Shown here: piece after piece, positions 22,114 through 47,594 of the stretch | Numbering within the stretch: position 1 is the stretch's first letter | Layout of the letters: each line of letters begins with the position of its first letter | Source of the DNA: Macrostomum lignano | Lineage: Eukaryota | DNA: 64,000 nucleotides | Assembly (NCBI GenBank): GCA_002269645.1 | Contig: NIVC01002212.1 | Span: forward strand, 1-64,000 | Direction: 5' to 3' | Translations under genes and position numbers: made by a program | The notes under the pieces: generated by a model | Databases searched by the model: none | Told to the model about the DNA's origin: nothing | What the model saw: only the letters and a program-made list of their open reading frames with translations

Positions 22114-22597
22114 CAGGAATTGAACGGTTCGCGCAGTGGCCTTGCAAAGCAGGGCGCAATGCAAATTCGAAGCCATAAAAGCAGACTGAGCGGCAGCCGA
22201 GTGCAACAGAATTAGTTCGAACTCCCAAGAAGCAAGCAAGCAGTTCCCAATCTTATTGGAACGGCCTGCGCACATCTGGAAGTTGTTGCCGCGATTTTCC
22301 TGCTTTTGCTAGGCAAATTCTCTCTTCTAGAAGAGAGAAACTCCAACAGCAGCGGGCCATCAATTTGCATTTGCGCAACGGGTGGCTCTCCAGCCAGATC
22401 CCATGGGATCTCTGGACCAACAGGGTTTCCGCCAGATTGGGAGGAAACCTCCGCACTTTTAATGGCATTTTTTCGAACTCGGGTCAGCTTTTGGGGAAAT
22501 TTTTCTCTTGAGCAAGAAAACTTCCTCGTGTATTTAAACTGAATTTTTTATGGGGTTCCAGGCTTGAGCACTATTCTCCTGCCCCCAAAATTTGAAC

Positions 22598-22720: not shown

Positions 22721-23108
22721 ATGCTCACAATCCTTTGTTTAAAGTCCCCTAGATTGATAATCTCCTGTGTTCACGTCCCAAAAAATTCAGAACTCAGAGT
22801 GTTTATTATTCCACATTTTTCTGAAATCTCGAAACTTCTCAACCCCAAAAGAAACTTACCAGAGGTTTTCACTCCATCTGCAGCGCGGATTACAGTTGGT
22901 GAAAATGCCTCTTTGCGGTGGGAGGGCTCCAGCTCATGGTGGCTTGTGCTGAAAGTTGAAGACAGGGATTTCGGTACTTGCAGCACAGTCTGGACAGCCC
23001 AGACCTCGGACTTTCCCAGATCCTAACTTTTATAATTACAAATTGCATTTCATTCCCCCAAATGGTAAAACGGTAAAAGTAACAAAAATCTGAATTCCTA
23101 AAGTTGAG

Positions 23109-26057
23109 GGTTTGTGAAGTGTAGGGTTTGTGAAGTGTAGAGTTTGTGAAGTGTAGGGTTTGTGAAGTGTAGGGTTTGTGAAGTGTAGGGTTTGTGAAGT
23201 GTAGGGTTTGTGAAGTGTAGGGTTTGTGAAGTGTAGGGTTTGTGAAGTGTAGGGTTTGTGAAGTGTAGGGTTTGTGAAGTGTAGGGTTTGTGAAGTGTAG
23301 AGTTTGTGAAGTGTAGGGTTTGTGAAGTGTAGGGTTTGTGAAGTGTAGGGTTTGTGAAGTGTAGGGTTTGTGAAGTGTAGGGTTTGTGAAGTGTAGGGTT
23401 TGTGAAGTGTAGGGTTTGTGAAGTGTAGAGTTTGTGAAGTGTAGGGTTTGTGAAGTGTAGGGTTTGTGAAGTTAAGGGTTTGTGAAGTGTGGGGTTTGTG
23501 AAGTGTAGAGTTTGTGAAGTGTAGGGTTTGTGAAGTGTAGGGTTTGTGAAGTGTAGGGTTTGTGAAGTGTAGGGTTTGTGAAGTGTAGGGTTTGTGAAGT
23601 GTAGGGTTTGTGAAGTGTAGGGTTTGTGAAGTGTAGGGTTTGTGAAGTGTAGGGTTTGTGAAGTGTAGGGTTTGTGAAGTGTAGAGTTTGTGAAGTGTAG
23701 GGTTTGTGAAGTGTAGGGTTTGTGAAGTGTAGGGTTTGTGAAGTGTAGGGTTTGTGAAGTGTAGGGTTTGTGAAGTGTAGGGTTTGTGAAGTGTAGACTT
23801 TGTGAAGTGTAGAGTTTGTGAAGTGTAGGGTTTGTGAAGTGTAGGGTTTGTGAAGTTAAGGGTTTGTGAAGTGTAGGGTTTGTGAAGTGTAGAGTTTGTG
23901 AAGTGTAGGGTTTGTGAAGTTAAGGGTTTGTGACGTGTAGAGTTTGTGAAGTGTAGGGTTTGTGAAGTGTAGGGTTTGTGAAGTGTAGGGTTTGTGAAGT
24001 GTAGGGTTTGTGAAGTGTAGGGTTTGTGAAGTGTAGGGTTTGTGAAGTGTAGGGTTTGTGAAGTGTAGGGTTTGTGAAGTGTAGGGTTTGTGAAGTGTAG
24101 AGTTTGTGAAGTGTAGGGTTTGTGAAGTGTAGGGTTTGTGAAGTTAAGGGTTTGTGAAGTGTAGAGTTTGTGAAGTGTAGGGTTTGTGAAGTTAAGGGTT
24201 TGTGACGTGTAGAGTTTGTGAAGTGTAGGGTTTGTGAAGTGTAGGGTTTGTGAAGTGTAGGGTTTGTGAAGTGTAGGGTTTGTGAAGTGTAGGGTTTGTG
24301 AAGTGTAGGGTTTGTGAAGTGTAGGGTTTGTGAAGTGTAGAGTTTGTGAAGTGTAGGGTTTGTGAAGTGTAGGGTTTGTGAAGTTAAGGGTTTGTGAAGT
24401 GTAGGGTTTGTGAAGTGTAGAGTTTGTGAAGTGTAGGGTTTGTGAAGTGTAGGGTTTGTGAAGTGTAGGGTTTGTGAAGTGTAGGGTTTGTGAAGTGTAG
24501 GGTTTGTGAAGTGTAGGGTTTGTGAAGTGTAGGGTTTGTGAAGTGTAGGGTTTGTGAAGTGTAGGGTTTGTGAAGTGTAGGGTTTGTGAAGTGTAGAGTT
24601 TGTGAAGTGTAGGGTTTGTGAAGTGTAGGGTTTGTGAAGTTAAGGGTTTGTGAAGTGTAGAGTTTGTGAAGTGTAGGGTTTGTGAAGTTAAGGGTTTGTG
24701 ACGTGTAGAGTTTGTGAAGTGTAGGGTTTGTGAAGTGTAGGGTTTGTGAAGTGTAGAGTTTGTGAAGTGTAGGGTTTGTGAAGTGTAGGGTTTGTGAAGT
24801 GTAGAGTTTGTGAAGTGTAGGGTTTGTGAAGTGTAGGGTTTGTGACGTGTAGGGTTTCTGAAGTTAAGGGTTTGTGAAGTGTAGGGTTTGTGAAGTGTAG
24901 AGTTTGTGAAGTGTAGGGTTTGTGAAGTTAAGGGTTTGTGACGTGTAGAGTTTTTGAAGTGTAGGGTTTGTGAAGTGTAGGGTTTGTGAAGTGTAGAGTT
25001 TGTGAAGTGTAGGGTTTGTGAAGTTAAGGGTTTGTGATGTGTAGAGTTTGTGGAGTGTAGGGTTTGTGAAGTGTAGGGTTTGTGAAGTGTAGGGTTTGTG
25101 AAGTGTAGGGTTTGTGAAGTGTAGGGTTTCTGAAGTTAAGGGTTTGTGAAGTGTAGGGTTTGTGAAGTTAAGGGTTTGTGACGTGTAGGGTTTCTTAAGT
25201 TAAGGGTTTGTGAAGTGTAGGGTTTGTGAAGTGTAGGGTTTCTGAAGTTAAGGGTTTGTGAAGTGTAGGGTTTGTGAAGTGTAGGGTTTGTGAAGTGTAG
25301 GGTTTGTGAAGTTAAGGGTTTGTGACGTGTAGGGTTTGTGAAGTTAAGGGTTTGTGACGTGTAGAGTTTGTGGAGTGTAGGGTTTGTGAAGTGTAGGGTT
25401 TGTGAAGTGTAGGGTTTGTGAAGTGTAGGGTTTGTGAAGTGTAGGGTTTGTGAAGTGTAGGGTTTGTGAAGTGTAGGGTTTGTGAAGTGTAGGGTTTGTG
25501 AAGTTAAGGGTTTGTGACGTGTAGGGTTTCTGAAGTTAAGGGTTTGTGAAGTGTAGGGTTTGTGAAGTGTAGGGTTTGTGAAGTGTAGGGTTTGTGAAGT
25601 TAAGAGTTTGTGACGTGTAGGGTTTCTGAAGTTAAGGGTTTGTGAAGTGTAGGGTTTGTGAAGTGTAGGGTTTGTGAAGTGTAGGGTTTCTGAAGTTAAG
25701 GGTTTGTGAAGTGTAGGGTTTGTGAAGTTAAGGGTTTGTGACGTGTAGGGTTTCTTAAGTTAAGGGTTTGTGAAGTGTAGGGTTTGTGAAGTGTAGGGTT
25801 TGTGAAGTGTAGGGTTTGTGAAGTGTAGGGTTTGTGAAGTGTAGGGTTTGTGAAGTGTAGGGTTTGTGAAGTGTAGGGTTTGTGAAGTTAAGGGTTTGTG
25901 ACGTGTAGGGTTTGTGAAGTTAAGGGTTTGTGACGTGTAGGGTTTCTTAAGTTAAGGGTTTGTGAAGTGTAGGGTTTGTGAAGTGTAGGGTTTCTGAAGT
26001 TAAGGGTTTGTGAAGTGTAGGGTTTGTGAAGTGTAGGGTTTGTGAAGTGTAGGGTTT
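23109..26057. repeat. 16-bp telomere-like satellite GTGTAGGGTTTGTGAA, about 184 copies
   Basis: G-rich strand on +. Variants are GTTAAGGG, GTAGAG, TTTCTG and GACG. Confidence 0.97.
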
Positions 26058-27264: not shown

Positions 27265-28310
27265 AGGGGCACCAGCTACAGAGGGGGCGCCAGCTACAAA
27301 GGGGCGGTAGCTACAGAGGGGCGCAGCTACAGAGGGGCGCCAGCTACAGACGGGCGCCAGCTACAGAGGGGCGCAGCTACAGAGGGGCGCCAGCTACAGA
27401 GGGGCGCCAGCTACAGAGGGGCGCCAGCTACAGAGGGGATGCCAGATAAAGAGGGGATGCCAGATAAAGAGGGGCGCCAGCTACAGAGGGGGTGCCAGCT
27501 ATAGAGGGGGTGCCAGCTAAATAGGGGGTGCCAGCTACAGAGGGGGCGCCAGCTACAGAGGGGCGCCAGCTACAGAGGGGATGCCAGATAAAGAGGGGGT
27601 GCCAGATAAAGAGGGGCGCCAGCTACAGAGGGGGTGCCAGCTACAGAGGGGGTGCCAGATAAAGAGGGGCGCCAGCTACAGAGGGGATGCCAGATAAAGA
27701 GGGGGTGCCAGATAAAGAGGGGCGCCAGCTACAGAGGGGGTGCCAGCTACAGAGGGGGTGCCAGCTAAAGAGGGGGTGCCAGCTACAGAGGGGGCGCCAG
27801 CTACAGAGGGGCGCCAGCTACAGAGGGGATGCCAGATAAAGAGGGGGTGCCAGATAAAGAGGGGCGCCAGCTACAGAGGGTGTGCCAGCTACAGAGGGGG
27901 CGCCAGCTACAGAGGGGGCGCCAGCTACAGAGGGGGCGCCAGCTACAGAGGGGGCGCCAGCTACAGAGGGGGCGCCAGCTACAGAGGGGGCGCCAGCTAC
28001 AGAGGGGGTGCCAGCTAAAGAGGGGATGCCAGCTACGGAGGGAGCGCCAGCTACAGAGGGGGCGCCAGCTACAAAGGGGGCGCCAGCTACAAAGGGGGCG
28101 CCAGCTACAGAGGGGGCGCCAGCTACAGAGGGGGCGCCAGCTACAGAGGGGGCGCCAGCTACAGAGGGGGCGCCAGCTACAGAGGGGGCGCCAGCTACAG
28201 AGGGGGCGCCAGCTACAGAGGGGCGCCAGCTACAGAGGGGGCGCAAGCTACAGAGGGGGCGCCAGCTACAGAGGGGGCGCCAGCTACAGAGGGGGCGCCA
28301 GCTACAGAGG
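27265..28310. repeat. 17/18-bp minisatellite GAGGGG(G)CGCCAGCTACA, about 59 copies
   Basis: Reverse complement of the 4621-4957 unit. It includes GATGCCAGATAAA variants. Confidence 0.95.
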
Positions 28311-30792: not shown

Positions 30793-31894
30793 AAGCATTT
30801 CAAATACTAAACACTTTTCTAGATTTGCTCGGAGAGAAGAAAGCTCATGAAACGGAAAGAATAAGAATAATATGCATAGCAGCACTTAATGCATTAAAAA
30901 GAAATTTGCTGTGCTTTAACTGCACGTTTCCAAAAGAGCCAGTGTGCTATTGGTCGCTATTGTCTACTTCCCGGCAGTAGTGCCGTTGGAATGCTGATGC
31001 CACGCAGTTTACTGTCGGAATTCGTCTTGGTAAAATTTGAGCTGAAACCTTCTTGATTTTTGAATCCTTTTATGCTTATGGTTTAATCTGAATCGCATTC
31101 CTCATCACCGTTTCCAGAGCATCTGCACCACATTTGTGGAAATCTGTGGCTCCGATGCTGTTTAAAAGGCTGTTTGAAGAAGCTCTGACTTCACGAGTTG
31201 AATCCGAGATTAAATTTGTGCTACTCGTAGTAGTGAAACTGGAGCTCCTGCATCTAAAACTGACAACATCAAGTCGAATCGCTGCAGTTTACCGTCCATG
31301 CAGTATTTAGCTGTCCCTGGCTCCTATTGTCTTTTCCACACAATGGAGCGCAGAGCGACCTGGCAAAAGTGCATGCAGGACAGCTTGAAGGAGAGGGTGG
31401 TGGGGCCTGACTTTGCCCACTGTGGCTGCGGCGTGTATGAAAGTACTTTTGTTGGCTGTGAAGCGGTACCTCTAATTTACAGTTGAGAGCCTCGGACCCA
31501 AGCTGGTATGCTAGTTAATTAACTGCGACCTGTGTCTTGGAGTAAGGAGTTGATGGGGTTGCCAGGAAACACGGGAACTGCTGAGTTTGAGGAGGGGAAC
31601 AGAAAACAGAAAACAAAGTGTTTTTTACTTCACTTGAATTTTCCTCCCACTTAAATTCTTTCAGCCAGCCTGAGTTTTCTTGCTGGCGCTGGAGCCTTTT
31701 GTTTACACAAGTTCAATAGTGCACGTCTGCTGCTGTGATGCTGGAATGATGCTGCTGACTCCGGTCTGCCAGCTCGTTCAATATTCCATTGTGTTGGTCA
31801 ACTTTGCCACGCAATGGGTGCCGATGGGAATCGTTCACCCGGAACGTGAACTCTTACTTCTCCTTTAAATCAAAGGCTTCAGAATATTCTTCTA

Positions 31895-32675
31895 CTAGAA
31901 TATGCTTCCAGTAGAACATGCTTCTATTGTAGAATATGCTTCTATTGTAGAATATGCTTCTATTGTAGAATATGCTTCTATTGTAGAATATGCTTCTATT
32001 GTAGAATATGCTTCTATTGTAGAATATGCTTCTATTGTAGAATATGCTTCTATTGTAGAATATGCTTCTATTGTAGAATATGCTTCTATTGTAGAATATG
32101 CTTCTATAGTAGAATATGCTTCTATTGTAGAATATGCTTCTATTGTAGAATATGCTTCTATAGTAGAATATGCTTCTATAGTAGAATATGCTTCTATTGT
32201 AGAATATGCTTCTATTGTAGAATATGCTTCTATAGTAGAATATGCTTCTATTGTAGAATATGCTTCTATTGTAGAATATGCTTCTATTGTAGAATATGCT
32301 TCTATTGTAGAATATGCTTCTATTGTAGAATATGCTTCTATTGTAGAATATGCTTCTATTGTAGAATATGCTTCTATTGTAGAATATGCTTCTATAGTAG
32401 AATATGCTTCTATTGTAGAATATGCTTCTATTGTAGAATATGCTTCTATTGTAGAATATGCTTCTATAGTAGAATATGCTTCTATAGTAGAATATGCTTC
32501 TATTGTAGAATATGCTTCTATTGTAGAATATGCTTCTATAGTAGAATATGCTTCTATTGTAGAATATGCTTCTATTGTAGAATATGCTTCTATTGTAGAA
32601 TATGCTTCTATAGTAGAATATGCTTCTATAGTAGAATATGCTTCCAGTAGGATATGCTTCCAGTAGGATATGCTT
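31895..32675. repeat. 18-bp AT-rich minisatellite TAGAATATGCTTCTATTG, about 42 copies
   Basis: Each unit contains a TAGAA/TTCTA inverted pair. Confidence 0.97.
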
Positions 32676-33581
32676 CAATGCGTTTGACTCGTGAATAGAG
32701 AAAAGTTTCATACTGAAATATAAACTCACAAACTGCACTGACCCACAGCAATCAAACAGTGAAATAATTGCAAAGCAAGCACTGCAGACATCAAGTCAGT
32801 GCTCAGTCTATTCATAGCCGCAGCTGAGACGGGCAAAGCTTTTACCTACTAAAGCATTTTCTCTAAGAAACAGGCGTAATGCAGCTGGCACGATAGTGTA
32901 AACAAATGAAGGCAGCATGGCCACAGATGATTTTAGTAATTTTCTCAGCTGCCGATGCATTTCGTCAAACGAGAGGGCATCTTTTTGGCCAGTTTTTATA
33001 CGAAGAGCAAGTGTTGCTGGATTCTTTTATTTATGCATTCTAAGAAAATGTCTTCTATTGCTGCTGCCTCCCTAATTTCGCAGCTGTCATTCCGCTGAAT
33101 AAAACAGCAGGCGGAAGGAGTGCAGAACGGAAAAGACGAAGAGATTGAAATTTAAATCAGAATTCATTGATTCAAGTTTCATAGTTCCTTTCCGCATCCT
33201 CATGAGAGCTTCATCAGTATCTTGCATGGCAAGATCGATCGAGTTGATCTACAAAACTTGCATAGGCGTCTAGGAGTGTGATATGCTAAGTAACTTGAGA
33301 AATTAAAAAAACAGTGAAATTCAAACAAACTTTTTGGATAACTGTGGACACGGTGTTCCATCAACATGTTGATATAAATTATTATCACCATGGGGTGCTC
33401 GCACAAAAGTTTTTTCATAGCAAGCAGAGTCTCTCATTGACGCTTTAGCTGATGTACATGTAAAAAATAAATAACTTTAAAATTAAAAATTCTAAAATAT
33501 TTCGAGTAATTTTGAAGGCATTTAAAATTAGAAAATATTTAAAAAACTGGATTCGCGGGTTAAAAGGTAATTTGCTCTGAT

Positions 33582-34885
33582 TGGCAGTGGGAACAGGGCA
33601 CAGGTGCAGAGAGCCAAAGCAGGATCTGCAGTGGGGACAGGGCACAGGTGCAGAGCCAAAGCAGGATCTGCAGTGGGGACAGGGCACAGGTGCAGAGCCA
33701 AAGCAGGATCTGCAGTGGGGACAGGGCACAGGTGCAGAGCCAAAGCAGGATCTGCAGTGGGAACAGGGCACAGGTGCAGAGCCAAAGCAGGATCTGCAGT
33801 GGGAACAGGGCACAGGTGCAGAGAGCCAAAGCAGGATCTGCAGTGGGGACAGGGCACAGGTGCAGAGCCAAAGCAGGATCTGCAGTGAAGACAGGGCACA
33901 GGTGCAGAGAGCCAAAGCAGGATCTGCAGTGGGGACAGGGCACAGGTGCAGAGAGCCAAAGCAGGATCTGCAGTGGGGACAGGGCACAGGTGCAGAGCCA
34001 AAGCAGGATCTGCAGTGGGGACAGGGCACAGGTGCAGAGCCAAAGCAGGATCTGCAGTGGGGACAGGGCACAGGTGCAGAGAGCCAAAGCAGGATCTGCA
34101 GTGGGGACAGGGCACAGGTGCAGAGCCAAAGCAGGATCTGCAGTGGGGACAGGGCACAGGTGCAGAGCCAAAGCAGGATCTGCAGTGGGGACAGGGCACA
34201 GGTGCAGAGAGCCAAAGCAGGATCTGCAGTGGGGACAGGGCACAGGTGCAGAGAGCCAAAGCAGGATCTGCAGTGGGGACAGGGCACAGGTGCAGAGAGC
34301 CAAAGCAGGATCTGCAGTGGGGACAGGGCACAGGTGCAGAGAGCCAAAGCAGGATCTGCAGTGGGGACAGGGCACAGGTGCAGAGCCAAAGCAGGATCTG
34401 CAGTGGGAACAGGGCACAGGTGCAGAGCCAAAGCAGGATCTGCAGTGGGAACAGGGCACAGGTGCAGAGAGCCAAAGCAGGATCTGCAGTGGGGACAGGG
34501 CACAGGTGCAGAGAGCCAAAGCAGGATCTGCAGTGGGGACAGGGCACAGGTGCAGAGAGCCAAAGCAGGATCTGCAGTGGGGACAGGGCACAGGTGCAGA
34601 GAGCCAAAGCAGGATCTGCAGTGGGGACAGGGCACAGGTGCAGAGAGCCAAAGCAGGATCTGCAGTGGGGACAGGGCACAGGTGCAGAGAGCCAAAGCAG
34701 GATCTGCAGTGGGGACAGGGCACAGGTGCAGAGAGCCAAAGCAGGATCTGCAGTGGGGACAGGGCACAGGTGCAGAGAGCCAAAGCAGGATCTGCAGTGG
34801 GGACAGGGCACAGGTGCAGAGAGCCAAAGCAGGATCTGCAGTGGGGACAGGGCACAGGTGCAGAGAGCCAAAGCAGGATCTGCAG
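33582..34885. repeat. 42/44-bp minisatellite, about 30 copies
   Basis: Unit GCAGTGGGGACAGGGCACAGGTGCAGA(GA)GCCAAAGCAGGATCT. Confidence 0.97.
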
Positions 34886-35153
34886 TTGCGACATTAAGTT
34901 CAACAGCCCAAGTATGGAAGTAGAAAGACAGGAAATCTCGTTTCTTAGAAAATATGTTGGGGCTGCTTTTGCACGAACAATACGAGCTACTCTTGTAGGA
35001 AAAAACTTGGAATGATCTGCTTTATAAAGCTTTTCTTAGAAACGACGTTTCCCGACCTCCTCAAGTCCCCTCTGTATGCAGCTTGATCGATTGTACTGGT
35101 AAGAAGAGAAAAATGTTCGTCAGATTTGCTCAGAGACCAGGCAAGCCTGTCGG

Positions 35154-36093
35154 TCACATGTAGCCGTAAGCGACCACCTCGCAGAAGGTGAGGTGCCCGT
35201 TCAGCCGGTTGGTCACCCGCAGCCTGCGGCCGGCCATGTTGCAGGTGAAGTTCCGCACCGAGAAAGCGGTTGAGGTGACGAAGTCCACACAGGCGACGCC
35301 GTCCACCGTGATGACGAAGTTGTTGAGCCGGTGCGGGCAGCAGTCGCCGCGGTTGTACAGCGTCACCTCAGTGATGAAGGCCGGGTCAGCTGTGCCAGCC
35401 TCCCACCACTCGTTGACGCCGGACTCGGTGCAGAAGCAAGTCGAGAACGCCTGGGCCACGTTGCCGTCAGCAGCCTTGCCGCACAGGTTGCCGGTCGAAT
35501 ACACGGTGCTCTGCTCGCAGCCGGAGAGCGGCAGCTTGCAGATGCTGGAGACTAAAAGCAATAAAAGGTGGAACTGCTGGCTTATTGGAGTGATTGGGAA
35601 CGGCACTTCCCCCTTTTGAAGCAACAGAGATACAAATACTATAGATGCAGACCATCAGATGAATCAGATCACTAGGCTTTCGCTACTTTTGTACATCACC
35701 CGTGCAAATGATGACTGCATGTCAACAGATGCATGAATAGCCATACATGTATCTTATGCCCCTTTGCTCACAATCGAACTGTTGGTTCTTGTACACGGTC
35801 CCGGCAGCGGCCAGCCCGGCAGCTGTGGGCGACACCTCGCCGCCGGGAAGCATCAGGGAGCACTCGGAGTCTGCGAAGCGAGCGCAGAGGCACCAGCTCA
35901 AGATGGAGCACTCGTACAGGCACTGCACGAGACCGCGGCTGCTCACAGACAGCCGGACAACTCCGCATTGGCTGTCCGACTCCAGCCACATCGATCCATC
36001 AGCCACAGCGACTTCCGGCCCGGCCAGCAGCAGCCACAGGGCCAGCAAGAGAAGCGGCGGAACTCGAGACGGCAAAAGCGGACGGCAGAACAT
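35154..36093 (-). CDS. Secreted PAN/apple plus F-type (fucolectin) lectin domain protein, about 239 aa
   Basis: Exon 1 (36093-35772) has a signal peptide (..PPLLLLALWLLLAG..) and a PAN-like SRGLVQCLYECSILSWCLCARFADSECSL. Exon 2 (35551-35154) has KAADGN..CFCT..NEWW..EVTLYNRGDCCPHRL..LTFCEVVAYG. The intron is phase 1, GTGAGC..TTTTAG. Confidence 0.88.
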
Positions 36094-36480
36094 CTTCCGG
36101 AATTCGAGTCTGGGAACCCTAAAAGCGGCTTTGCAAGTTTATAAATGACTAAAAATGAGTGCGCCGGCTGAATACCACCTGCTGCATGCTAACTGCTTTT
36201 AGTTGGACATCGCCAGTCCGCTCCAATAGCAGTGAAGATGGAGGCCTGTGCTTTAATGACAAGACAGGCTGATACTCTTAGTATAATTGGGATACACCTG
36301 CTTATAACACAATTTTATTAATCCTGCGAAAAATCACGAAAAATAGCGAAATTCTCAACCATTAGCAATTATGAATTAATATAAATTCTCATAAACACGA
36401 TTCAGTAAAATATCAAAAGAGAAAAGCATGACAGAGTATGCAATAAACTACGAGTGCCGTCACAACAATACGGTGAAGTT

Positions 36481-39400
36481 CTAATGCAGTTTATTATTCT
36501 TGATCTTAAGAAATTTAATACGATTGTGGGTGGACTCCAGAGTGTTAATAAACACCTGAGTGGCGTCCTGAAGCTCTTTGCCGGCCTCCTGGTACCACTG
36601 CTTGAACGAGTCCTCGCAGATGATTGCGTTATCAAGGTAGGCGAAGAAGAGGTCGTTTATCAACTCTGCAGTGCATTTAGAAGGAATGCGCAGTTGAAAC
36701 TACTGAAGCACAGTGAGTAGAAAGGTCAGAGCATTGCTACCAGCAAAGCAAAACTCACCAAGTGAAAGGCCTGCACTCTTTATGGTGTCGCAGGTGGCGC
36801 TGAGAACCCACTGCTGTTGCTGCTCATGGGTCTCAATGTGCCGCATAAGGACTGGCTTAACCAGCAGGAACAGCGGCTTGTTCAGCTTCTTGCTCTCTGC
36901 AAAGCGTGAGAATTCAAGTCACAACTGACCTGCCATAAAGATGCTCCATCACTGCAAATGCACATCACCGACTGCCCACTCACGAGTGCAGCCGCGACAG
37001 ACGCTTCGCACGAGAACCCGGATGAACTCCCGAGACTCCATCTGCTTCTTGTCCACCTCCTTCTCTATGAGGGCGATCAGCTCCTCGGACAGCAGGTCCT
37101 TCGCCGAGGCGTCGCCGTCTGCGTTGCCGATTTTCTGCTCGATCCAGTCGCCGACGACGTCCAGGGCGATGGGCGATGGCGACAGCGTCGTCTCATGCAG
37201 AGTGAACTCCAGCTTGTTGGCTGCAACGAAGTCCGCCGAGTCCGCCTGCGGCAGCTCCAGCAGGCTGTGCCACGCCATCCCCGCCTCCCGGAACGCCGCG
37301 CCCACCCGGTTGTGGCCGAGCCGCCCGCTGGCCAGGTGTAGCGCCCGCGACACCACCTCGCCCCGCAGAGGTCGCCGGCTCGAGTCTCGCAGGTCGGCGG
37401 GGATCCTCAGCACCAGCTGCTGCACGCAGGACAGGTAGGAGGCCGCCTTCTGCACAAAGGAGGAGAAAATCTCTCCCAGGTAGCTGGACAAAAGCGGGAA
37501 GTCCGACAGGAAGTCGTCCGCCATCTCCATGATGGGTGAGAAGCTGCGGGGGAGCGGATGATGGGTGGGAGTCTGCAATCTACTGAAATCAATTCACAAC
37601 CCAAGGCCCAGAGCCGCTGTGCCACCCAGGCTGCTGACAGCTGGGCCTCCCAGGCTTCTGACAGCTGGGCCTCCCAGGCTTCTGACAGCTGGGCCTCCCA
37701 GGCTGCTGACAGCTGGGCCTCCCAGGCTTCTGGCAGCTGGGCCTCCCAGGCTTCTGACAGCTGGGCCTCCCAGGCTTCTGACAGCTGGGCCTCCCAGGCT
37801 TCTGACAGCTGGGCCTCCCAGGCTTCTGGCAGCTGGGCCTCCCAGGCTGCTGGCAGCTGGGCCTCCCAGGCTGCTGGCAGCTGGGCCTCCCAGGCTGCTG
37901 ACAGCTGGGCCTCCCAGGCTCCTGACAGCTGGGATCGCGTCGAGCTTCAGACAGCAAAAACTTCGTCAGCCGGGGGCCTCGGGGGCCTCACCGGGTCAGA
38001 CGGTAATTCCAAAATTCATCCTGCTGACGCATCGCGGTGAGCAGCTTCATCACTTTGCCCAGACTCACCCCTCAATAAGATCTTTCGAGCTGAGCAGCTC
38101 GCTGTGCAGCAACTCGAAGAGCAGCTGGCCGCCCTTCTCCCGAAGCTCTTTGCTGTTTTCATTCAGCAGGTGCTCCGCGTTCACCTCCACGAAGGCGCTG
38201 ATTTCCGGGTGACGCGAGATTTCAATGAAGTTGGATTTGGTGTCCTGAATGGAAGAAGGTGAGGGAGAGGATGTGGTGCTTCAGATTCTTCAGACACATT
38301 TATGCAAGGCAAGAGCTTACATCTAGCGAGCACAGGGAGCCGAGCCACTCCATCATTATGTTTTTGCTCTTCCGCTCCAGAACGTCCCGCGGTATCGGCG
38401 GCGGCTCAACGGACCGTGGCGACTCAACGGCCCGCGCCGGCAGCTCCTGGCTGGACTGAGAGCGCGGCATCTTGCCGGAGGCCGTCAGCGCTGCCACAGC
38501 GGGTTGCTGCAGCTGCTGCGATGGCGACAGCGTCGTCTCATGCAGAGTGAACTCCAGCTTGTTGGCTGCAACGAAGTCCGCCGCGTCCGCCTGCGGCAGC
38601 TCCAGCAGGCTGTGCCACGCCATCCCCGCCTCCCGGAACGCCGCGCCCACCCGGTTGTGGCCGAGCCGCCCGCTGGCCAGGTGTAGCGCCCGCGACACCA
38701 CCTCGCCCCGCAGAGGTCGCCGGCTCGAGTCTCGCAGGTCGGCGGGGATCCTCAGCACCAGCTGCTGCACGCAGGACAGGTAGGAGGCCGCCTTCTGCAC
38801 AAAGGAGGAGAAAATCTCTCCCAGGTAGCTGGACAAAAGCGGGAAGTCCGACAGGAAGTCGTCCGCCATCTCCATGATGGGTGAGAAGCTGCGGGGGAGC
38901 GGATGATGGGTGGGAGTCTGCAATCTACTGAAATCAATTCACAACCCAAGGCCCAGAGCCGCTGTGCCACCCAGGCTGCTGACAGCTGGGCCTCCCAGGC
39001 TTCTGACAGCTGGGCCTCCCAGGCTTCTGACAGCTGGGCCTCCCAGGCTGCTGACAGCTGGGCCTCCCAGGCTTCTGACAGCTGGGCCTCCCAGGCTTCT
39101 GACAGCTGGGCCTCCCAGGCTGCTGGCAGCTGGGCCTCCCAGGCTTCTGGCAGCTGGGCCTCCCAGGTTGCTGGCAGCTGGGCCTCCCAGGCTTCTGACA
39201 GCTGGGCCTCCCAGGCTTCTGACAGCTGGGCCTCCCAGGCTTCTGACAGCTGGGCCTCCCAGGCTTCTGGCAGCTGGGCCTCCCAGGCTGCTGGCAGCTG
39301 GGCCTCCCAGGCTGCTGGCAGCTGGGCCTCCCAGGCTGCTGACAGCTGGGCCTCCCAGGCTCCTGACAGCTAGGATCGCGTCGAGCTTCAGACAGCAAAA

Positions 39401-42400
39401 ACTTCGTCAGCCGGGGGCCTCGGGGGCCTCACCGGGTCAGACGGTAATTCCAAAATTCATCCTGCTGACGCATCGCGGTGAGCAGCTTCATCACTTTGCC
39501 CAGACTCACCCCTCAATAAGATCTTTCGAGCTGAGCAGCTCGCTGTGCAGCAACTCGAAGAGCAGCTGGCCGCCCTTCTCCCGAAGCTCTTTGCTGTTTT
39601 CATTCAGCAGGTGCTCCGCGTTCACCTCCACGAAGGCGCTGATTTCCGGGTGACGCGAGATTTCAATGAAGTTGGATTTGGTGTCCTGAATGGAAGAAGG
39701 TGAGGGAGAGGATGTGGTGCTTCAGATTCTTCAGACACATTTATGCAAGGCAAGAGCTTACATCTAGCGAGCACAGGGAGCCGAGCCACTCCATCATTAT
39801 GTTTTTGCTCTTCCGCTCCAGAACGTCCCGCGGTATCGGCGGCGGCTCAACGGACCGTGGCGACTCAACGGCCCGCGCCGGCAGCTCCTGGCTGGACTGA
39901 GAGCGCGGCATCTTGCCGGAGGCCGTCAGCGCTGCCACAGCGGGTTGCTGCAGCTGCTGCGATGGCGACAGCGTCGTCTCATGCAGAGTGAACTCCAGCT
40001 TGTTGGCTGCAACGAAGTCCGCCGCGTCCGCCTGCGGCAGCTCCAGCAGGCTGTGCCACGCCATCCCCGCCTCCCGGAACGCCGCGCCCACCCGGTTGTG
40101 GCCGAGCCGCCCGCTGGCCAGGTGTAGCGCCCGCGACACCACCTCGCCCCGCAGAGGTCGCCGGCTCGAGTCTCGCAGGTCGGCGGGGATCCTCAGCACC
40201 AGCTGCTGCACGCAGGACAGGTAGGAGGCCGCCTTCTGCACAAAGGAGGAGAAAATCTCTCCCAGGTAGCTGGACAAAAGCGGGAAGTCCGACAGGAAGT
40301 CGTCCGCCATCTCCATGATGGGTGAGAAGCTGCGGGGGAGCGGATGATGGGTGGGAGTCTGCAATCTACTGAAATCAATTCACAACCCAAGGCCCAGAGC
40401 CGCTGTGCCACCCAGGCTGCTGACAGCTGGGCCTCCCAGGCTTCTGACAGCTGGGCCTCCCAGGCTTCTGACAGCTGGGCCTCCCAGGCTGCTGACAGCT
40501 GGGCCTCCCAGGCTTCTGACAGCTGGGCCTCCCAGGCTTCTGACAGCTGGGCCTCCCAGGCTGCTGGCAGCTGGGCCTCCCAGGCTTCTGGCAGCTGGGC
40601 CTCCCAGGTTGCTGGCAGCTGGGCCTCCCAGGCTTCTGACAGCTGGGCCTCCCAGGCTTCTGACAGCTGGGCCTCCCAGGCTTCTGACAGCTGGGCCTCC
40701 CAGGCTTCTGGCAGCTGGGCCTCCCAGGCTGCTGGCAGCTGGGCCTCCCAGGCTGCTGGCAGCTGGGCCTCCCAGGCTGCTGACAGCTGGGCCTCCCAGG
40801 CTCCTGACAGCTAGGATCGCGTCGAGCTTCAGACAGCAAAAACTTCGTCAGCCGGGGGCCTCGGGGGCCTCACCGGGTCAGACGGTAATTCCAAAATTCA
40901 TCCTGCTGACGCATCGCGGTGAGCAGCTTCATCACTTTGCCCAGACTCACCCCTCAATAAGATCTTTCGAGCTGAGCAGCTCGCTGTGCAGCAACTCGAA
41001 GAGCAGCTGGCCGCCCTTCTCCCGAAGCTCTTTGCTGTTTTCATTCAGCAGGTGCTCCGCGTTCACCTCCACGAAGGCGCTGATTTCCGGGTGACGCGAG
41101 ATTTCAATGAAGTTGGATTTGGTGTCCTGAATGGAAGAAGGTGAGGGAGAGGATGTGGTGCTTCAGATTCTTCAGACACATTTATGCAAGGCAAGAGCTT
41201 ACATCTAGCGAGCACAGGGAGCCGAGCCACTCCATCATTATGTTTTTGCTCTTCCGCTCCAGAACGTCCCGCGGTATCGGCGGCGGCTCAACGGACCGTG
41301 GCGACTCAACGGCCCGCGCCGGCAGCTCCTGGCTGGACTGAGAGCGCGGCATCTTGCCGGAGGCCGTCAACGCTGCCACAGCGGGTTGCTGCAGCTGCTG
41401 CGATGGCGACAGCGTCGTCTCATGCAGAGTGAACTCCAGCTTGTTGGCTGCAACGAAGTCCGCCGCGTCCGCCTGCGGCAGCTCCAGCAGGCTGTGCCAC
41501 GCCATCCCCGCCTCCCGGAACGCCGCGCCCACCCGGTTGTGGCCGAGCCGCCCGCTGGCCAGGTGTAGCGCCCGCGACACCACCTCGCCCCGCAGAGGTC
41601 GCCGGCTCGAGTCTCGCAGGTCGGCGGGGATCCTCAGCACCAGCTGCTGCACGCAGGACAGGTAGGAGGCCGCCTTCTGCACAAAGGAGGAGAAAATCTC
41701 TCCCAGGTAGCTGGACAAAAGCGGGAAGTCCGACAGGAAGTCGTCCGCCATCTCCATGATGGGTGAGAAGCTGCGGGGGAGCGGATGATGGGTGGGAGTC
41801 TGCAATCTACTGAAATCAATTCACAACCCAAGGCCCAGAGCCGCTGTGCCACCCAGGCTGCTGACAGCTGGGCCTCCCAGGCTTCTGACAGCTGGGCCTC
41901 CCAGGCTTCTGACAGCTGGGCCTCCCAGGCTTCTGACAGCTGGGCCTCCCAGGCTTCTGACAGCTGGGCCTCCCAGGCTGCTGGCAGCTGGGCCTCCCAG
42001 GCTGCTGGCAGCTGGGCCTCCCAGGCTTCTGGCAGCTGGGCCTCCCAGGTTGCTGGCAGCTGGGCCTCCCAGGCTTCTGACAGCTGGGCCTCCCAGGCTT
42101 CTGACAGCTGGGCCTCCCAGGCTTCTGACAGCTGGGCCTCCCAGGCTTCTGGCAGCTGGGCCTCCCAGGCTGCTGGCAGCTGGGCCTCCCAGGCTGCTGA
42201 CAGCTGGGCCTCCCAGGCTCCTGACAGCTGGGATCGCGTCGAGCTTCAGACAGCAAAAACTTCGTCAGCCGGGGGCCTCGGGGGCCTCACCGGGTCAGAC
42301 GGTAATTCCAAAATTCATCCTGCTGACGCATCGCGGTGAGCAGCTTCATCACTTTGCCCAGACTCACCCCTCAATAAGATCTTTCGAGCTGAGCAGCTCG

Positions 42401-45400
42401 CTGTGCAGCAACTCGAAGAGCAGCTGGCCGCCCTTCTCCCGAAGCTCTTTGCTGTTTTCATTCAGCAGGTGCTCCGCGTTCACCTCCACGAAGGCGCTGA
42501 TTTCCGGGTGACGCGAGATTTCAATGAAGTTTGATTTGGTGTCCTGAATGGAAGAAGGTGAGGGAGAGGATGTGGTGCTTCAGATTCTTCAGACACATTT
42601 ATGCAAGGCAAGAGCTTACATCTAGCGAGCACAGGGAGCCGAGCCACTCCATCATTATGTTTTTGCTCTTCCGCTCCAGAACGTCCCGCGGTATCGGCGG
42701 CGGCTCAACGGACCGTGGCGACTCAACGGCCCGCGCCGGCAGCTCCTGGCTGGACTGAGAGCGCGGCATCTTGCCGGAGGCCGTCAACGCTGCCACAGCG
42801 GGTTGCTGCAGCTGCTGCGATGGCGACAGCGTCGTCTCATGCAGAGTGAACTCCAGCTTGTTGGCTGCAACGAAGTCCGCCGCGTCCGCCTGCGGCAGCT
42901 CCAGCAGGCTGTGCCACGCCATCCCCGCCTCCCGGAACGCCGCGCCCACCCGGTTGTGGCCGAGCCGCCCGCTGGCCAGGTGTAGCGCCCGCGACACCAC
43001 CTCGCCCCGCAGAGGTCGCCGGCTCGAGTCTCGCAGGTCGGCGGGGATCCTCAGCACCAGCTGCTGCACGCAGGACAGGTAGGAGGCCGCCTTCTGCACA
43101 AAGGAGGAGAAAATCTCTCCCAGGTAGCTGGACAAAAGCGGGAAGTCCGACAGGAAGTCGTCCGCCATCTCCATGATGGGTGAGAAGCTGCGGGGGAGCG
43201 GATGATGGGTGGGAGTCTGCAATCTACTGAAATCAATTCACAACCCAAGGCCCAGAGCCGCTGTGCCACCCAGGCTGCTGACAGCTGGGCCTCCCAGGCT
43301 TCTGACAGCTGGGCCTCCCAGGCTTCTGACAGCTGGGCCTCCCAGGCTGCTGACAGCTGGGCCTCCCAGGCTTCTGACAGCTGGGCCTCCCAGGCTTCTG
43401 ACAGCTGGGCCTCCCAGGCTGCTGGCAGCTGGGCCTCCCAGGCTTCTGGCAGCTGGGCCTCCCAGGTTGCTGGCAGCTGGGCCTCCCAGGCTTCTGACAG
43501 CTGGGCCTCCCAGGCTTCTGACAGCTGGGCCTCCCAGGCTTCTGACAGCTGGGCCTCCCAGGCTTCTGGCAGCTGGGCCTCCCAGGCTGCTGGCAGCTGG
43601 GCCTCCCAGGCTGCTGGCAGCTGGGCCTCCCAGGCTGCTGACAGCTGGGCCTCCCAGGCTCCTGACAGCTGGGATCGCGTCGAGCTTCAGACAGCAAAAA
43701 CTTCGTCAGCCGGGGCCTCGGGGGCCTCACCGGGTCAGACGGTAATTCCAAAATTCATCCTGCTGACGCATCGCGGTGAGCAGCTTCATCACTTTGCCCA
43801 GACTCACCCCTCAATAAGATCTTTCGAGCTGAGCAGCTCGCTGTGCAGCAACTCGAAGAGCAGCTGGCCGCCCTTCTCCCGAAGCTCTTTGCTGTTTTCA
43901 TTCAGCAGGTGCTCCGCGTTCACCTCCACGAAGGCGCTGATTTCCGGGTGACGCGAGATTTCAATGAAGTTGGATTTGGTGTCCTGAATGGAAGAAGGTG
44001 AGGGAGAGGATGTGGTGCTTCAGATTCTTCAGACACATTTATGCAAGGCAAGAGCTTACATCTAGCGAGCACAGGGAGCCGAGCCACTCCATCATTATGT
44101 TTTTGCTCTTCCGCTCCAGAACGTCCCGCGGTATCGGCGGCGGCTCAACGGACCGTGGCGACTCAACGGCCCGCGCCGGCAGCTCCTGGCTGGACTGAGA
44201 GCGCGGCATCTTGCCGGAGGCCGTCAGCGCTGCCACAGCGGGTTGCTGCAGCTGCTGCGATGGCGACAGCGTCGTCTCATGCAGAGTGAACTCCAGCTTG
44301 TTGGCTGCAACGAAGTCCGCCGCGTCCGCCTGCGGCAGCTCCAGCAGGCTGTGCCACGCCATCCCCGCCTCCCGGAACGCCGCGCCCACCCGGTTGTGGC
44401 CGAGCCGCCCGCTGGCCAGGTGTAGCGCCCGCGACACCACCTCGCCCCGCAGAGGTCGCCGGCTCGAGTCTCGCAGGTCGGCGGGGATCCTCAGCACCAG
44501 CTGCTGCACGCAGGACAGGTAGGAGGCCGCCTTCTGCACAAAGGAGGAGAAAATCTCTCCCAGGTAGCTGGACAAAAGCGGGAAGTCCGACAGGAAGTCG
44601 TCCGCCATCTCCATGATGGGTGAGAAGCTGCGGGGGAGCGGATGATGGGTGGGAGTCTGCAATCTACTGAAATCAATTCACAACCCAAGGCCCAGAGCCG
44701 CTGTGCCACCCAGGCTGCTGACAGCTGGGCCTCCCAGGCTTCTGACAGCTGGGCCTCCCAGGCTTCTGACAGCTGGGCCTCCCAGGCTGCTGACAGCTGG
44801 GCCTCCCAGGCTTCTGACAGCTGGGCCTCCCAGGCTTCTGACAGCTGGGCCTCCCAGGCTGCTGACAGCTGGGCCTCCCAGGCTTCTGGCAGCTGGGCCT
44901 CCCAGGCTTCTGACAGCTGGGCCTCCCAGGCTGCTGGCAGCTGGGCCTCCCAGGCTTCTGACAGCTGGGCCTCCCAGGCTTCTGACAGCTGGGCCTCCCA
45001 GGCTTCTGGCAGCTGGGCCTCCCAGGCTGCTGGCAGCTGGGCCTCCCAGGCTGCTGGCAGCTGGGCCTCCCAGGCTGCTGACAGCTGGGCCTCCCAGGCT
45101 CCTGACAGCTGGGATCGCGTCGAGCTTCAGACAGCAAAAACTTCGTCAGCCGGGGGCCTCGGGGGCCTCACCGGGTCAGACGGTAATTCCAAAATTCATC
45201 CTGCTGACGCATCGCGGTGAGCAGCTTCATCACTTTGCCCAGACTCACCCCTCAATAAGATCTTTCGAGCTGAGCAGCTCGCTGTGCAGCAACTCGAAGA
45301 GCAGCTGGCCGCCCTTCTCCCGAAGCTCTTTGCTGTTTTCATTCAGCAGGTGCTCCGCGTTCACCTCCACGAAGGCGCTGATTTCCGGGTGACGCGAGAT

Positions 45401-47594
45401 TTCAATGAAGTTGGATTTGGTGTCCTGAATGGAAGAAGGTGAGGGAGAGGATGTGGTGCTTCAGATTCTTCAGACACATTTATGCAAGGCAAGAGCTTAC
45501 ATCTAGCGAGCACAGGGAGCCGAGCCACTCCATCATTATGTTTTTGCTCTTCCGCTCCAGAACGTCCCGCGGTATCGGCGGCGGCTCAACGGACCGTGGC
45601 GACTCAACGGCCCGCGCTGGCAGCTCCTGGCTGGACTGAGAGCGCGGCATCTTGCCGGAGGCCGTCAACGCTGCCACAGCGGGTTGCTGCAGCTGCTGCG
45701 GATCCAGGTGCAGCGAGGCCTCCCGACTGGTGCCACGACTGGCGCTGGACTCTCGCGAGTTCTTCTGACTGCCCAACCTAGCGGAGGAGCGAGTTTGTGT
45801 TTAGCAAATTCTAAACATTTCTGAGGTCCAGGACAGGAAAACTAATTGAGGACGTCGAGAATCAAAGACAGTGTTTTCCCTTCTCTGAATTTTAGTATAC
45901 GACAAATCTTAGACATTTAGTATAGGTGGAAACCATTTTATGTTCTTTCCTATAATAGGTTATACCAGGGATGCTCAGAATATTCTCACCTCGGCGTGCC
46001 ACGGCCTCCGTCATCCTTGTCGCTGGGCCTTGCCTTGGCCACAAACGACGGTCGAGACGGGCCCAGCCGAGTCTGTGACTGGCCCTGCACCTGGCAGCTG
46101 CCGATGACCATCTTGCGAGCGTCCATCTTCTGTGCCTTGCGAGTCGTTGTTACTGGGGTCCACTTGCTGTTGGCCGCAAGGGTTTGCCCAGCAGGTGGAC
46201 GACTGAAGCCGCCCTGCCGGCCACCTCGAGTCTGCTGCTGCAGCTGCTGCGCCCACGATTCCTCATCCTGCCTGGCCTTCTGCTCCAGCTCCTCCTTCGT
46301 CATCGGCCTCTCGTGCAGCCGAATCTCCATCTCGCGCCGCTCCCAGTTCCGCTGCCGCATCTCTACGATGTCCTGCAGGCGGAACCGAACCTTCGACTCG
46401 ATCTCCTTGCTGTTGATCAGCTTCTTGATCCGCTCGAAGTACTGGTCGATTCGAGCCTTGGCGTTGTTCTCACTCTCCAGCTTTTTGCCGACTGTCTTCA
46501 GCAGCTCGCACAGGCACTCCAGCGACTCCGTGAACATGCTCTTGCTGCTGTGGTCTGACTTCAGCTGCGATACAATGCACTGATGGATGATGTTTGCCGT
46601 CAGGATGTCCTTCATGAACAGCTCGCCGATGAATCTGCAGTGAGGCATCATGAAATCACACAATACACTCTGCTAAGGAAGCGATTGACCCAGCTTCTAA
46701 CAGAAACTCACCTGATGTTCCCGTAATATTGGTCCTTTGCTTTCTTCATCTGCTCGTCCCTCTCCTCTTCCAGCGCCTTCTTCTTGTCTTCCTTCTCTTC
46801 TGCGTCGATCTTCTCTTGCCACTGCGCCCCCTTCTGCTCCATCTGCTCCTTCAGCGGAGTCTCGAACATTTCCTGGCATTTCTTCAGCAGCAGAGACCGG
46901 AAACCGATGAACTGTTTGTTCTCTTGAGACTGCTCGGGAAAGTTCACCTTGAGCTGCAGGTATGAAAATAGGAAACGTTAGAAATGATATTTACAAGCAC
47001 ACAAAACGTCTCAGTGTTTGCATAATATTTGTGACTATCGCTTACAAAGGCCAGCCGCTTGCAGATCTCAGCGAACACGGATGAGTAGGACTTCTCACGA
47101 GTGGCCTGCAGACAGAAAATGGGCGCATATTTAGCCAGGTGGGTGCAAGAGCAACTGCAGATTAGTTGAAATGAATTTTATTTATGGCGTAATCAGACAT
47201 AAACTGTTTTCTGCATTGCATATAAGTCAGGGATAACGGTCATCATAGGAGAAGTAGGTACCAGTCTACTCTCTCACTACAAGACAGTTATTACCTTCTC
47301 AAAGATGATGTCAACGCAGGCATTGAGACCTTGGATGCTGCCGATATCGCAGGTTGTGGTCAGCTGAGAGAAGCAGGACTCGAAGTTCTGCGGAGCAATC
47401 TTGTTCAGGATGGACCGAATGTCCCGCTCGGTCTTCTCCTTCTTGAGCTGCTCCTGGTCGTCAGGCTTCTTCTGCAGGAATCCGGGCACGTAGGGACAGT
47501 CGGTCTTGCGCATGTCGACCTTGACCTTGCGCACCTCAGTCGTAAGCTGTGACTTGGGTGCTGGTTTTGGCTGAGAGCTGTAGGACGTGTTCAG
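36481..47594 (-). CDS. EIF4G: Eukaryotic translation initiation factor 4G (MIF4G, six MA3, W2); 5' end unresolved
   Basis: Exons 47594-47295, 47105-47046, 46953-46712, 46634-45990, 45777-45501 and 45424-45249. Then five pairs: 44627-44060/43983-43808, 43187-42620/42543-42368, 41770-41203/41126-40951, 40329-39762/39685-39510 and 38888-38321/38244-38069. Then 37543-36984, 36896-36759 and 36665-36481. Total 6303 nt, in frame. Motifs: IRSILNKI, GNIRFIGELF, ESLECLCELLKTVGK and RFRLQDIVEMR (MIF4G); MADDFLSDFP..YLGE (MA3); YLDNAIICEDSFKQW (W2 AA-box). Confidence 0.92.
37174..45700. repeat. Six-copy segmental tandem duplication inside eIF4G (1345, 1441, 1441, 1417, 1440 and 1441 bp)
   Basis: Unit starts at 37174, 38519, 39960, 41401, 42818 and 44258. 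Each unit holds two MA3 exons and an intronic 24-bp minisatellite, GCTGGGCCTCCCAGGCTTCTGACA (12, 16, 16, 15, 16 and 16 copies). Confidence 0.95.

Follow-up and report, generated by a model that had tools for sequence, protein, structure and literature searches.

A probable young six-fold amplification of an MA3 exon block in an N-terminally truncated eIF4G paralog of Macrostomum lignano

The window analysed here, 64,000 nucleotides of Macrostomum lignano contig NIVC01002212.1 (GenBank assembly GCA_002269645.1, positions 1 to 64,000 of the forward strand), carries on its minus strand an eIF4G-like gene in which the exons encoding the MA3 domain are arranged as a head-to-tail array of six units (37173-45700). 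We consider it probable, at roughly 60%, that this is a real and very young exon-block amplification in one homeolog or haplotype of a truncated eIF4G paralog, and one that is probably neutral or nearly so. The protein encoded by the locus would consist of MIF4G, a long linker, six repeats of a 43-residue linker with a complete MA3 domain and then a W2-like region, giving 2073 residues from the ATG.

The array is formed by units U1 (37173-38517, 1345 bp), U2 (38518-39958, 1441 bp), U3 (39959-41399, 1441 bp), U4 (41400-42816, 1417 bp), U5 (42817-44256, 1440 bp) and U6 (44257-45697, 1441 bp), all on the minus strand, together with a GCG microhomology at 45698-45700. A generic repeat finder recovers six in-register copies with a period of about 1.44 kb and spacings of 1345, 1441, 1441, 1417, 1440 and 1441 bp. 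On direct comparison the homology stops exactly at the unit boundaries 37173 and 45698, except for the GCG shared by 37173-37175 and 45698-45700, and the junction 40-mer reads ...GACGCTGTCGCCATCGCAGCAGCTGCAGCAACCC... on the sense strand. The CGC/GCG triplet is found at both ancestral sites in two comparison loci, L001, which has one unit, and L002, which holds the full-length eIF4G gene of the species. This indicates that the first duplication was a simple microhomology junction, with the 3' part of exon E7 joined to the 5' part of exon E5. Self-BLAST detected no other large-unit duplication in the window; the remaining repeats are short-unit minisatellites only, and a dispersed repeat family with members elsewhere in the window was rejected since matches outside the array are likewise confined to minisatellites.

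Every exon boundary of the gene was placed by motif and the splice dinucleotides were then checked. AG/GT is present at all boundaries, including those of the six copies of E6 (6/6, 176 nt) and of the five chimeric exons (5/5, 568 nt). The first recognisable exon, E1 (47295-47594, acceptor 47595/47594), contains the start ATG (47513-47511, MRKTDCPYVPG...), and the same methionine begins the annotated protein P0002. With E2 (47046-47105), E3 (46712-46953) and E4 (45990-46634) it encodes MIF4G/HEAT-1 and the beginning of a long disordered linker. The original pre-MA3 exon E5 (45501-45777) encodes the first helix of MA3 and contains the 5' breakpoint, which precedes QQLQQPA at the unit boundary 45697/45698. 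The 176-nt MA3 exon E6 then occurs at 45249-45424, 43808-43983, 42368-42543, 40951-41126, 39510-39685 and 38069-38244, alternating with chimeric exons that combine the 5' part of E7 and the 3' part of E5 (44060-44627, 42620-43187, 41203-41770, 39762-40329 and 38321-38888). The terminal, non-chimeric E7 (36984-37543) encodes the end of the last MA3, the 3' breakpoint (37172/37173) and the start of the W2-like (HEAT-3) region, and is followed by E8 (36759-36896) and E9 (36481-36665, stop TAG at 36481-36483), which encode the W2-like C-terminus. All of these exons lie on the minus strand.

The conceptual mRNA contains 860 codons with one unit and 2100 with six, with a single terminal stop in each case; counted from the ATG at 47513 the predicted proteins have 833 and 2073 residues, respectively. 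One unit corresponds to 744 coding nucleotides (248 residues, QQLQQPA... to ...HETTLSPS). The frame is open across the junction HETTLSPS-QQLQQPA, and the six protein units are identical apart from an Ala/Ser difference in the 3'-most unit. We take the gene model to be valid because it is collinear, without gaps, with annotated M. lignano proteins. A preliminary description of the window had already proposed six units with a GCG breakpoint microhomology at 37173-37175 and 45698-45700, a 568-nt chimeric exon with intact splice sites, and an in-frame gain of 744 nt (248 residues) per unit that would lengthen the protein from about 860 to about 2100 residues. The boundaries were reproduced exactly, the exon was found in five copies with AG/GT throughout, and the lengths match the 860 and 2100 codons of the open reading frame (ORF).

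To place the breakpoints in the protein, we used P0002, which is 97% identical, as a stand-in for the window protein and modelled its structure with AF2 (22-sequence alignment, mean predicted local distance difference test score, pLDDT, of 73). The model has helical domains at residues 20-307 (MIF4G/HEAT-1), 459-648 (MA3/HEAT-2, block-mean pLDDT mostly 83-95) and 667-819 (the C-terminal, W2-like region), separated by a disordered stretch at 309-453 (pLDDT<50) and a low-confidence stretch at 658-664. The repeat unit corresponds to residues 416-663, starting in the long disordered linker and ending in the short inter-domain linker; in a phmmer alignment the breakpoint falls on the interdomain EAPGQ segment of human eIF4GI (PDB 1UG3). 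Since both breakpoints lie in linkers, each unit comprises, according to the model, a 43-residue linker and a complete MA3/HEAT-2 domain, and the six-unit protein should be able to fold as beads on a string. Foldseek matched the model to 8huj_B, the HEAT1 domain of eIF4G, with a template-modelling (TM) score of 0.87 on the target, to 8oz0_2, also eIF4G HEAT-1, to 1ug3_A, the C-terminal region of eIF4GI, and to the DAP5 structures 4IUL, 3L6A and 3D3M; PDCD4 (2zu6_E) was a weak match with E=0.037.

MIF4G/HEAT-1 binds eIF4A, eIF3 and RNA. Every MA3 unit keeps a D-x3-D-x-P segment (MADDFLSDFP), and the columns corresponding to D550, D554 and P556 are at least 90% conserved among 22 eIF4G-family sequences. 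These may be the columns of PDCD4 D414 and D418, an equivalence offered as a lead only. The acidic residues D414 and D418 of PDCD4 MA3c take part in eIF4A binding (PMC8551656). If the gene is translated, it is conceivable that several molecules of eIF4A would be bound per protein.

The best protein matches of the window gene are M. lignano proteins. P0002 (PAA94720.1, Mlig018935g1, 825 residues, starting MRKTDCPYVPG) is 97% identical to the window protein and P0001 (BOX15_Mlig013413g3, 1427 residues, a full-length eIF4G with KYDRGFLLSL) is 96% identical; the more distant eIF4G1/3 proteins of fish, molluscs and aphids share 25-29%. Pfam identifies MIF4G clearly (PF02854, E=1.2e-27, 97.4 bits against a cut-off of 30.8) and MA3 marginally (PF02847, 23.9 bits against a cut-off of 23.2), and W2 (PF02020) has no match at E<=0.01 in the window protein. 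The C-terminal 340 residues nevertheless align to the MA3 and W2 domains of 1UG3 (phmmer E=2.8e-19), reaching residue 333 of the 339 in that chain.

Residues 1-520 of P0001, which include the KYDRGFLLSL eIF4E-binding site, have no counterpart anywhere in the window by tblastn, and nucleotide homology to the full-length gene on L002 starts at window position 47571, inside E1. The window exons are 98-99% identical to this full-length gene, and the window gene is a partial copy of the species' own eIF4G at 94-99% identity. The unmatched N-terminus and the break of homology inside E1 mark the window gene as a truncated paralog rather than the canonical eIF4G: judged by these alignments, it is not the organism's eIF4G but a recent partial duplicate that starts just upstream of MIF4G, of the kind represented by Mlig018935g1. 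The earlier naming of the gene as eIF4G thus holds for the family, given the MIF4G and MA3 domains, but not for "the" eIF4G of the species. We found no literature on Mlig018935, Mlig013413 or Macrostomum eIF4G.

Nearly all of the differences in a multiple alignment of the six units fall within an intronic 24-bp minisatellite (GCTGGGCCTCCCAGGCTTCTGACA), which forms one block per unit (37616-37933, 38961-39371, 40402-40812, 41843-42232, 43260-43673 and 44700-45113). Outside it there are five substitution columns, one of them at the minisatellite edge, and a 1-bp deletion at 43711 in an intronic G-run, private to U5. Pairs of units differ at 1-3 of the 1053 non-minisatellite columns, with a mean of 1.9 (0.18%), an agreement far beyond chance. 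Exactly four differences are coding. The only non-synonymous one is a change of Ala to Ser at 37239 in the terminal E7, private to U1; outgroup comparison with L001 and L002 identifies one derived silent variant common to U1, U2 and U5, and two further silent variants are private, one to U4 and one to U6.

The core counts of the minisatellite are 12, 16, 16, 15, 16 and 16 in U1 to U6. Maps of variant repeats, in which the array units have 13-17 repeats and L001 has 8, read abbcbbedgbbbdeecf in U2, U3 and U5, abbcdbbbdeecf in U1, abbbbeedgbbbdecf in U4, abbcbbcdbebbdeecf in U6 and aeebeecf in L001, so that there are four different maps among the six units. All six units are mutually distinguishable, have 11 fixed differences from L001 in common and show a nested history. 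The preliminary description had listed the same minisatellite counts, an intronic 1-bp indel near 43711 and four coding differences, three silent and one Ser/Ala; we obtained identical counts, the indel is seen as the deletion in the G-run, and the unit alignment agrees on the coding variants.

Locus L001 (NIVC01000003.1:458027-481738 in assembly Mlig_3_7) is collinear with window positions 56158-25652 at about 97% identity and has one unit with 8 minisatellite repeats. On that contig a full-length eIF4G gene lies about 30 kb from the truncated paralog in the opposite orientation and, if the order is conserved, its counterpart would be just outside the window. The gap of about 30 kb between the full-length gene and the inverted truncated copy contains an ORF for a long terminal repeat (LTR) retrotransposon pol protein with RVT_1, RNase H and integrase domains (L002 5580-7697, Mlig_3_7 NIVC01000003.1).

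M. lignano is a neopolyploid with subgenomes S, L1 and L2, between which the divergence at single-nucleotide polymorphisms (SNPs) is 1.9-2.4% (PMC10733133). The divergence of the window from L001 is close to this value, and the window is best read, from its alignment, as a homeolog or haplotype of L001. A single SPS-P junction, indicating one unit, is present in all other M. lignano models, namely P0002, P0003, P0074, P0075 and the three full-length homeologs, which include P0001; in P0001 and P0002 it reads SPS-PIAL.

The single-unit counterpart Mlig018935g1 (P0002; ML2 models A0A1I8I699 and A0A1I8G5Z3) is an annotated gene in Mlig_3_7, and its locus is syntenic with the window over more than 23 kb. 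It shares with the window gene the start MRKTDCPYVPG, the exon structure, the 24-bp intronic minisatellite and 97% protein identity. It differs in having one MA3 unit and 8 repeats, where the window has six units with 13-17, and in its C-terminal tail and 3' flank; in addition, about 14 amino-acid changes are private to the window copy.

The mean difference within the array, 1.9 of 1053 columns (0.18%), compares with 11-13 columns (1.1%) to L001, so that the within-array divergence is about one-sixth of the split from that locus. On these distances the array is evidently young, younger than the homeolog split, and the growth of a real array by unequal exchange after separation from the L001 lineage appears well supported. 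A recent unequal-crossover array had been suggested from the window alone, and both the pattern of internal variants and the syntenic one-unit locus now favour that suggestion.

From the anatomy of the locus, we envisage that a point in the linker after MA3/HEAT-2 was first joined, at the 3-bp CGC/GCG microhomology, to one in the linker that precedes this domain, and that unequal exchange between the resulting repeats would then have lifted the copy number to six. Because the breakpoints fall in linkers and the 744-nt units bring their own splice sites, the locus is still one ORF. The splice sites are identical in all units, so that skipping of whole units would stay in frame and mRNAs could carry from one to six MA3 domains. 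The array could be tolerated since the neopolyploid genome, rich in tandem repeats, has this truncated, redundant gene in at least three or four near-identical copies. In the M. lignano genome simple and tandem repeats make up 15%, and 180-312 Mb lie in blocks that are at least 95% identical (PMC5730564).

Selective constraint was assessed by the Nei-Gojobori method. Between the window gene and L001 the synonymous divergence (dS) is 0.027-0.036 and the non-synonymous divergence (dN) 0.012-0.017, with dN/dS of 0.43-0.47, and the comparison with the full-length gene gives similar values. With L002 used to polarise the changes, 7 synonymous and 14 non-synonymous ones fall on the window branch, a dN/dS of about 0.6 from small counts, and 7 and 8 on the L001 branch. 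The array-bearing copy has the most private amino-acid changes of all the copies compared, found in no other copy and including R to W, G to D and a cluster replacing VEI by EKT; KKEKTERD, GHNRVG and VGDWIEQ are segments with such private variants. These values suggest that constraint on the window gene is relaxed but not absent.

The 3' end of the gene (36108-36571, minus strand) is also altered. The last 8 codons (SPSTDS and the stop) and the 3' untranslated region (UTR) are 100% common to L001 and the full-length gene on L002, whereas in the window the native end is replaced by unrelated AT-rich sequence and the protein ends with a different 16-residue tail, ...NRIKFLKIKNNKLH, before the stop. 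The divergence from both loci begins at about 36525 and runs downstream. L001 has an 80%-similar copy of this AT-rich sequence about 720 bp further downstream, after a degenerate repeat of the exon end. The private changes and the altered 3' end would fit relaxed constraint at least as well as they fit a new function.

Some of our results weigh against a real and nearly neutral amplification, or at least give it no help. A search of 5.8 billion proteins with the 193-residue junction peptide returned only P0076, a Logan fragment from a relative that has a single SPS-P junction, and is uninformative since it also missed P0001 and P0002 despite long exact stretches. Exact look-up of the junction ORF in the protein collections was negative. 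A control ORF, the terminal one of the same copy, was also absent, and this gene copy is therefore simply not in the collection. Function is still compatible with the dN/dS below 1 and the intact frame of 2100 codons; on the other hand, so many private non-synonymous changes, together with a replaced 3' end, may signal a decaying copy.

The last point leads to the alternative that the gene is dead, an unexpressed or decaying pseudogene in which the repeat is a large-unit satellite growing in junk DNA and the open frame reflects youth only. We regard this as possible but rather unlikely. It would account for the missing eIF4G N-terminus, with no upstream coding exon found in the window, for the private amino-acid changes, for last codons and a 3' flank unlike those of L001 and the full-length gene, and for surroundings full of minisatellites. 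The gene is also not among the annotated proteins recovered, although this absence says little, given that the GenBank annotation of Mlig_3_7 left out transcripts overlapping repeat annotations (PMC5730564). Against a dead copy stand the dN/dS below 1 and the 97%-identical single-unit counterpart, which is annotated in a set built from transcripts (PMC5730564). Neither stop codons nor frameshifts occur across the 2100 codons, but at such low divergence (dS of only about 0.03) the lack of disabling mutations is weak evidence either way.

A different doubt concerns the assembly: noisy long reads, or a mixture of the three subgenomes, might have led the assembler to create the array or at least to inflate its copy number to six. 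Assemblies of M. lignano are known to be difficult, with 64% of Mlig_3_7 bases scored as error-free by REAPR and 36% of assembly length in subgenome-chimeric scaffolds (PMC5730564, PMC10733133); the 1-bp deletion in the G-run of U5 resembles a long-read consensus error and the junction is in no other database copy. The five junctions, however, are base-identical and located at a microhomology, which haplotig-type false duplications do not give, and we rejected such a duplication because the units differ by 0.18% and not by the approximately 2% expected of homeologs strung together. The four minisatellite maps, the one shared derived and three private substitutions and the private intronic deletion indicate that the assembler had reads for separate copies. 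These maps and variants would be hard to obtain from a simple assembly loop and argue against one; moreover, an array of 8.5 kb is within reach of single long reads. An artefact is in our judgement improbable.

At the other extreme, the protein with six MA3 domains might be produced and favoured by selection, whether as a multivalent scaffold for eIF4A or as an eIF4A sponge resembling PDCD4, perhaps with polymorphic copy number or with exon skipping as a means of tuning. In its favour, the 2100 codons form an unbroken frame with every splice site intact, all units hold a whole MA3 domain flanked by linkers and retain the D-x3-D-x-P motif, and three of the four coding variants within the array are silent. 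Yet an in-frame result is expected by chance in about one-third of duplications, and three silent changes against one replacement are too few for a test. The MA3 domain of DAP5, the other relative of eIF4G without the N-terminus, is reported not to bind eIF4A. Selection would find further encouragement in the annotation of the single-unit paralog in the transcript-based Mlig_3_7 set (PMC5730564), in eIF4G3-like genes with two MA3 domains, older and diverged, that persist in a fish and an oyster, and in the binding of eIF4A by multi-MA3 PDCD4 proteins (PMC3850090). The array is nevertheless found in only one of at least four known copies of the paralog and is much younger than the homeolog split, and it sits in a gene with a window-branch dN/dS of about 0.6 and a replaced native 3' end. 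On balance we think selection for such a protein very unlikely. We hold out equally little expectation that a transcribed copy, with several or all units spliced in, yields a protein derived from eIF4G that lacks a cap-binding module, carries as many as six functional MA3 domains and titrates or clusters eIF4A. That this protein would serve as a brake in the manner of PDCD4 or as a "super-scaffold" independent of the cap, at a dose set by variable copy number and in-frame skipping, belongs to the same proposal and is just as doubtful.

The window gene can be set beside several known proteins. Canonical eIF4G (M. lignano Mlig013413g1-3, 1427 residues; human eIF4GI, PDB entries 1UG3, 8HUJ and 8OZ0) has MIF4G/HEAT-1, MA3/HEAT-2 and W2/HEAT-3 in the order of the corresponding regions of the window protein, the last of which is W2-like. 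The window gene differs from it in having six MA3 domains, not one, and in lacking the N-terminus of about 590 residues with the poly(A)-binding protein (PABP) region and the Y-x4-L-phi eIF4E-binding motif. DAP5 (p97, eIF4G2) is an ancient separate lineage that combines MIF4G, MA3 and W2 and, like the window gene, has no eIF4E- and PABP-binding N-terminus. We rejected orthology to it since the window exons are 98-99% identical to the species' own eIF4G, with the homology breaking inside exon 1.

Tandem MA3 domains that arose by internal duplication are also known from PDCD4, which has two in animals and four in land plants (PMC3850090) and whose MA3 domains bind eIF4A (PMC3850090, PMC8551656). 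PDCD4 is an inhibitor with an N-terminal RNA-binding region and without MIF4G or W2, whereas the window protein keeps the scaffold domains of eIF4G. Membership of the PDCD4 family was rejected on the presence of MIF4G, on the best relatives all being eIF4G and on the poor structural match noted above.

One chimeric exon, searched exhaustively with phmmer against 1.84 billion representatives, gave only 26 relatives. Two of these are predicted eIF4G3-like proteins with MIF4G, two MA3 domains and W2, from Synchiropus splendidus (XP_053716583.1, P0090) and Crassostrea gigas (XP_019923590.1, P0082), in which the Pfam eIF4E-binding domain was not found at E<=0.001. As in the window gene, the duplicated block is a linker with a whole MA3, ending just after an (E/Q)FT motif. 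The two copies are diverged (73% identity in P0090 and 68.5% in P0082) and the duplications must therefore be old, in contrast to the six units in the window, which are more than 99% identical. These proteins look like independent, older cases of the same block duplication. The premise of the preliminary description that metazoan eIF4G has one MA3 is, accordingly, not universal. We found no experimental work on either gene prediction.

A third candidate precedent, P0078 from Argiope (2018 residues, two MIF4G and two MA3), was rejected; it looks like two fused adjacent genes, which an older annotation splits into proteins of 1259 and 837 residues. Within M. lignano, the C-terminal part of the MA3 unit has 52% identity to a 125-residue stretch of the gene model P0077 (A0A1I8JPF8, 550 residues, 'Ephrin_rec_like domain-containing'), which may be another MA3 fragment or a fused model. 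Multiplication of MA3 is thus a known evolutionary move, and six near-identical copies in an eIF4G-type scaffold are a new extreme.

The downstream neighbour of the array-bearing gene (35157-36093, minus strand) is a two-exon gene for a secreted protein with an F5/8 type C or NedA-like galactose-binding domain (PF22633, E=1e-8). Its first exon is identical over 107 of 107 residues to the C-terminal part of the ML2 model A0A1I8I699 (P0075), compared with 95% for L001, and several ML2 models fuse the eIF4G paralog to this gene. A homolog search with the neighbour returned only a 57% paralog; it also missed P0075 and P0003, which contain the query, and its negatives are therefore uninformative. 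Elsewhere in the window two ORFs are probably exons of neighbouring genes: one at 15493-16374 (minus strand) has a clear RhoGEF domain (PF00621, E=9e-26), and one at 8101-8751 (plus strand) has a weak EML beta-propeller match (E=1.5e-5, far below the cut-off).

Long minisatellite arrays with units of 16-55 bp and lengths of up to about 3 kb fill the window (23107-26057, 12372-13548, 20449-22114, 33584-34893, 31881-32676, 16387-17500, 27266-28310 and 5650-6548). Two of them are strongly strand-biased, with GC skews of +0.95 at 24-26 kb and -0.53 at 12-14 kb, and the 17/18-bp array at 4621-4949 is the reverse complement of the one at 27266-28310.

If the array is real and expressed, it would give the highest MA3 valency yet seen in an eIF4G-type protein and a clean snapshot of the birth of a domain repeat, with breakpoints in linkers, a chimeric exon, a conserved frame and unequal exchange; the one-unit ancestor would still be available in the same genome for comparison. 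The functional reading, if true, would show domain valency in the course of evolving within a core translation factor of a neopolyploid, and would be notable were junction-spanning transcripts and a protein of about 230 kDa to be found. Should the array be neutral or an artefact, it would illustrate how the repeat-rich, redundant genome of M. lignano makes and tolerates such variants, and that gene models there need validation at the level of reads. More generally, duplication of the MA3 block recurs in eIF4G paralogs without the eIF4E-binding region, which hints at an architecture that is tolerated and perhaps useful.

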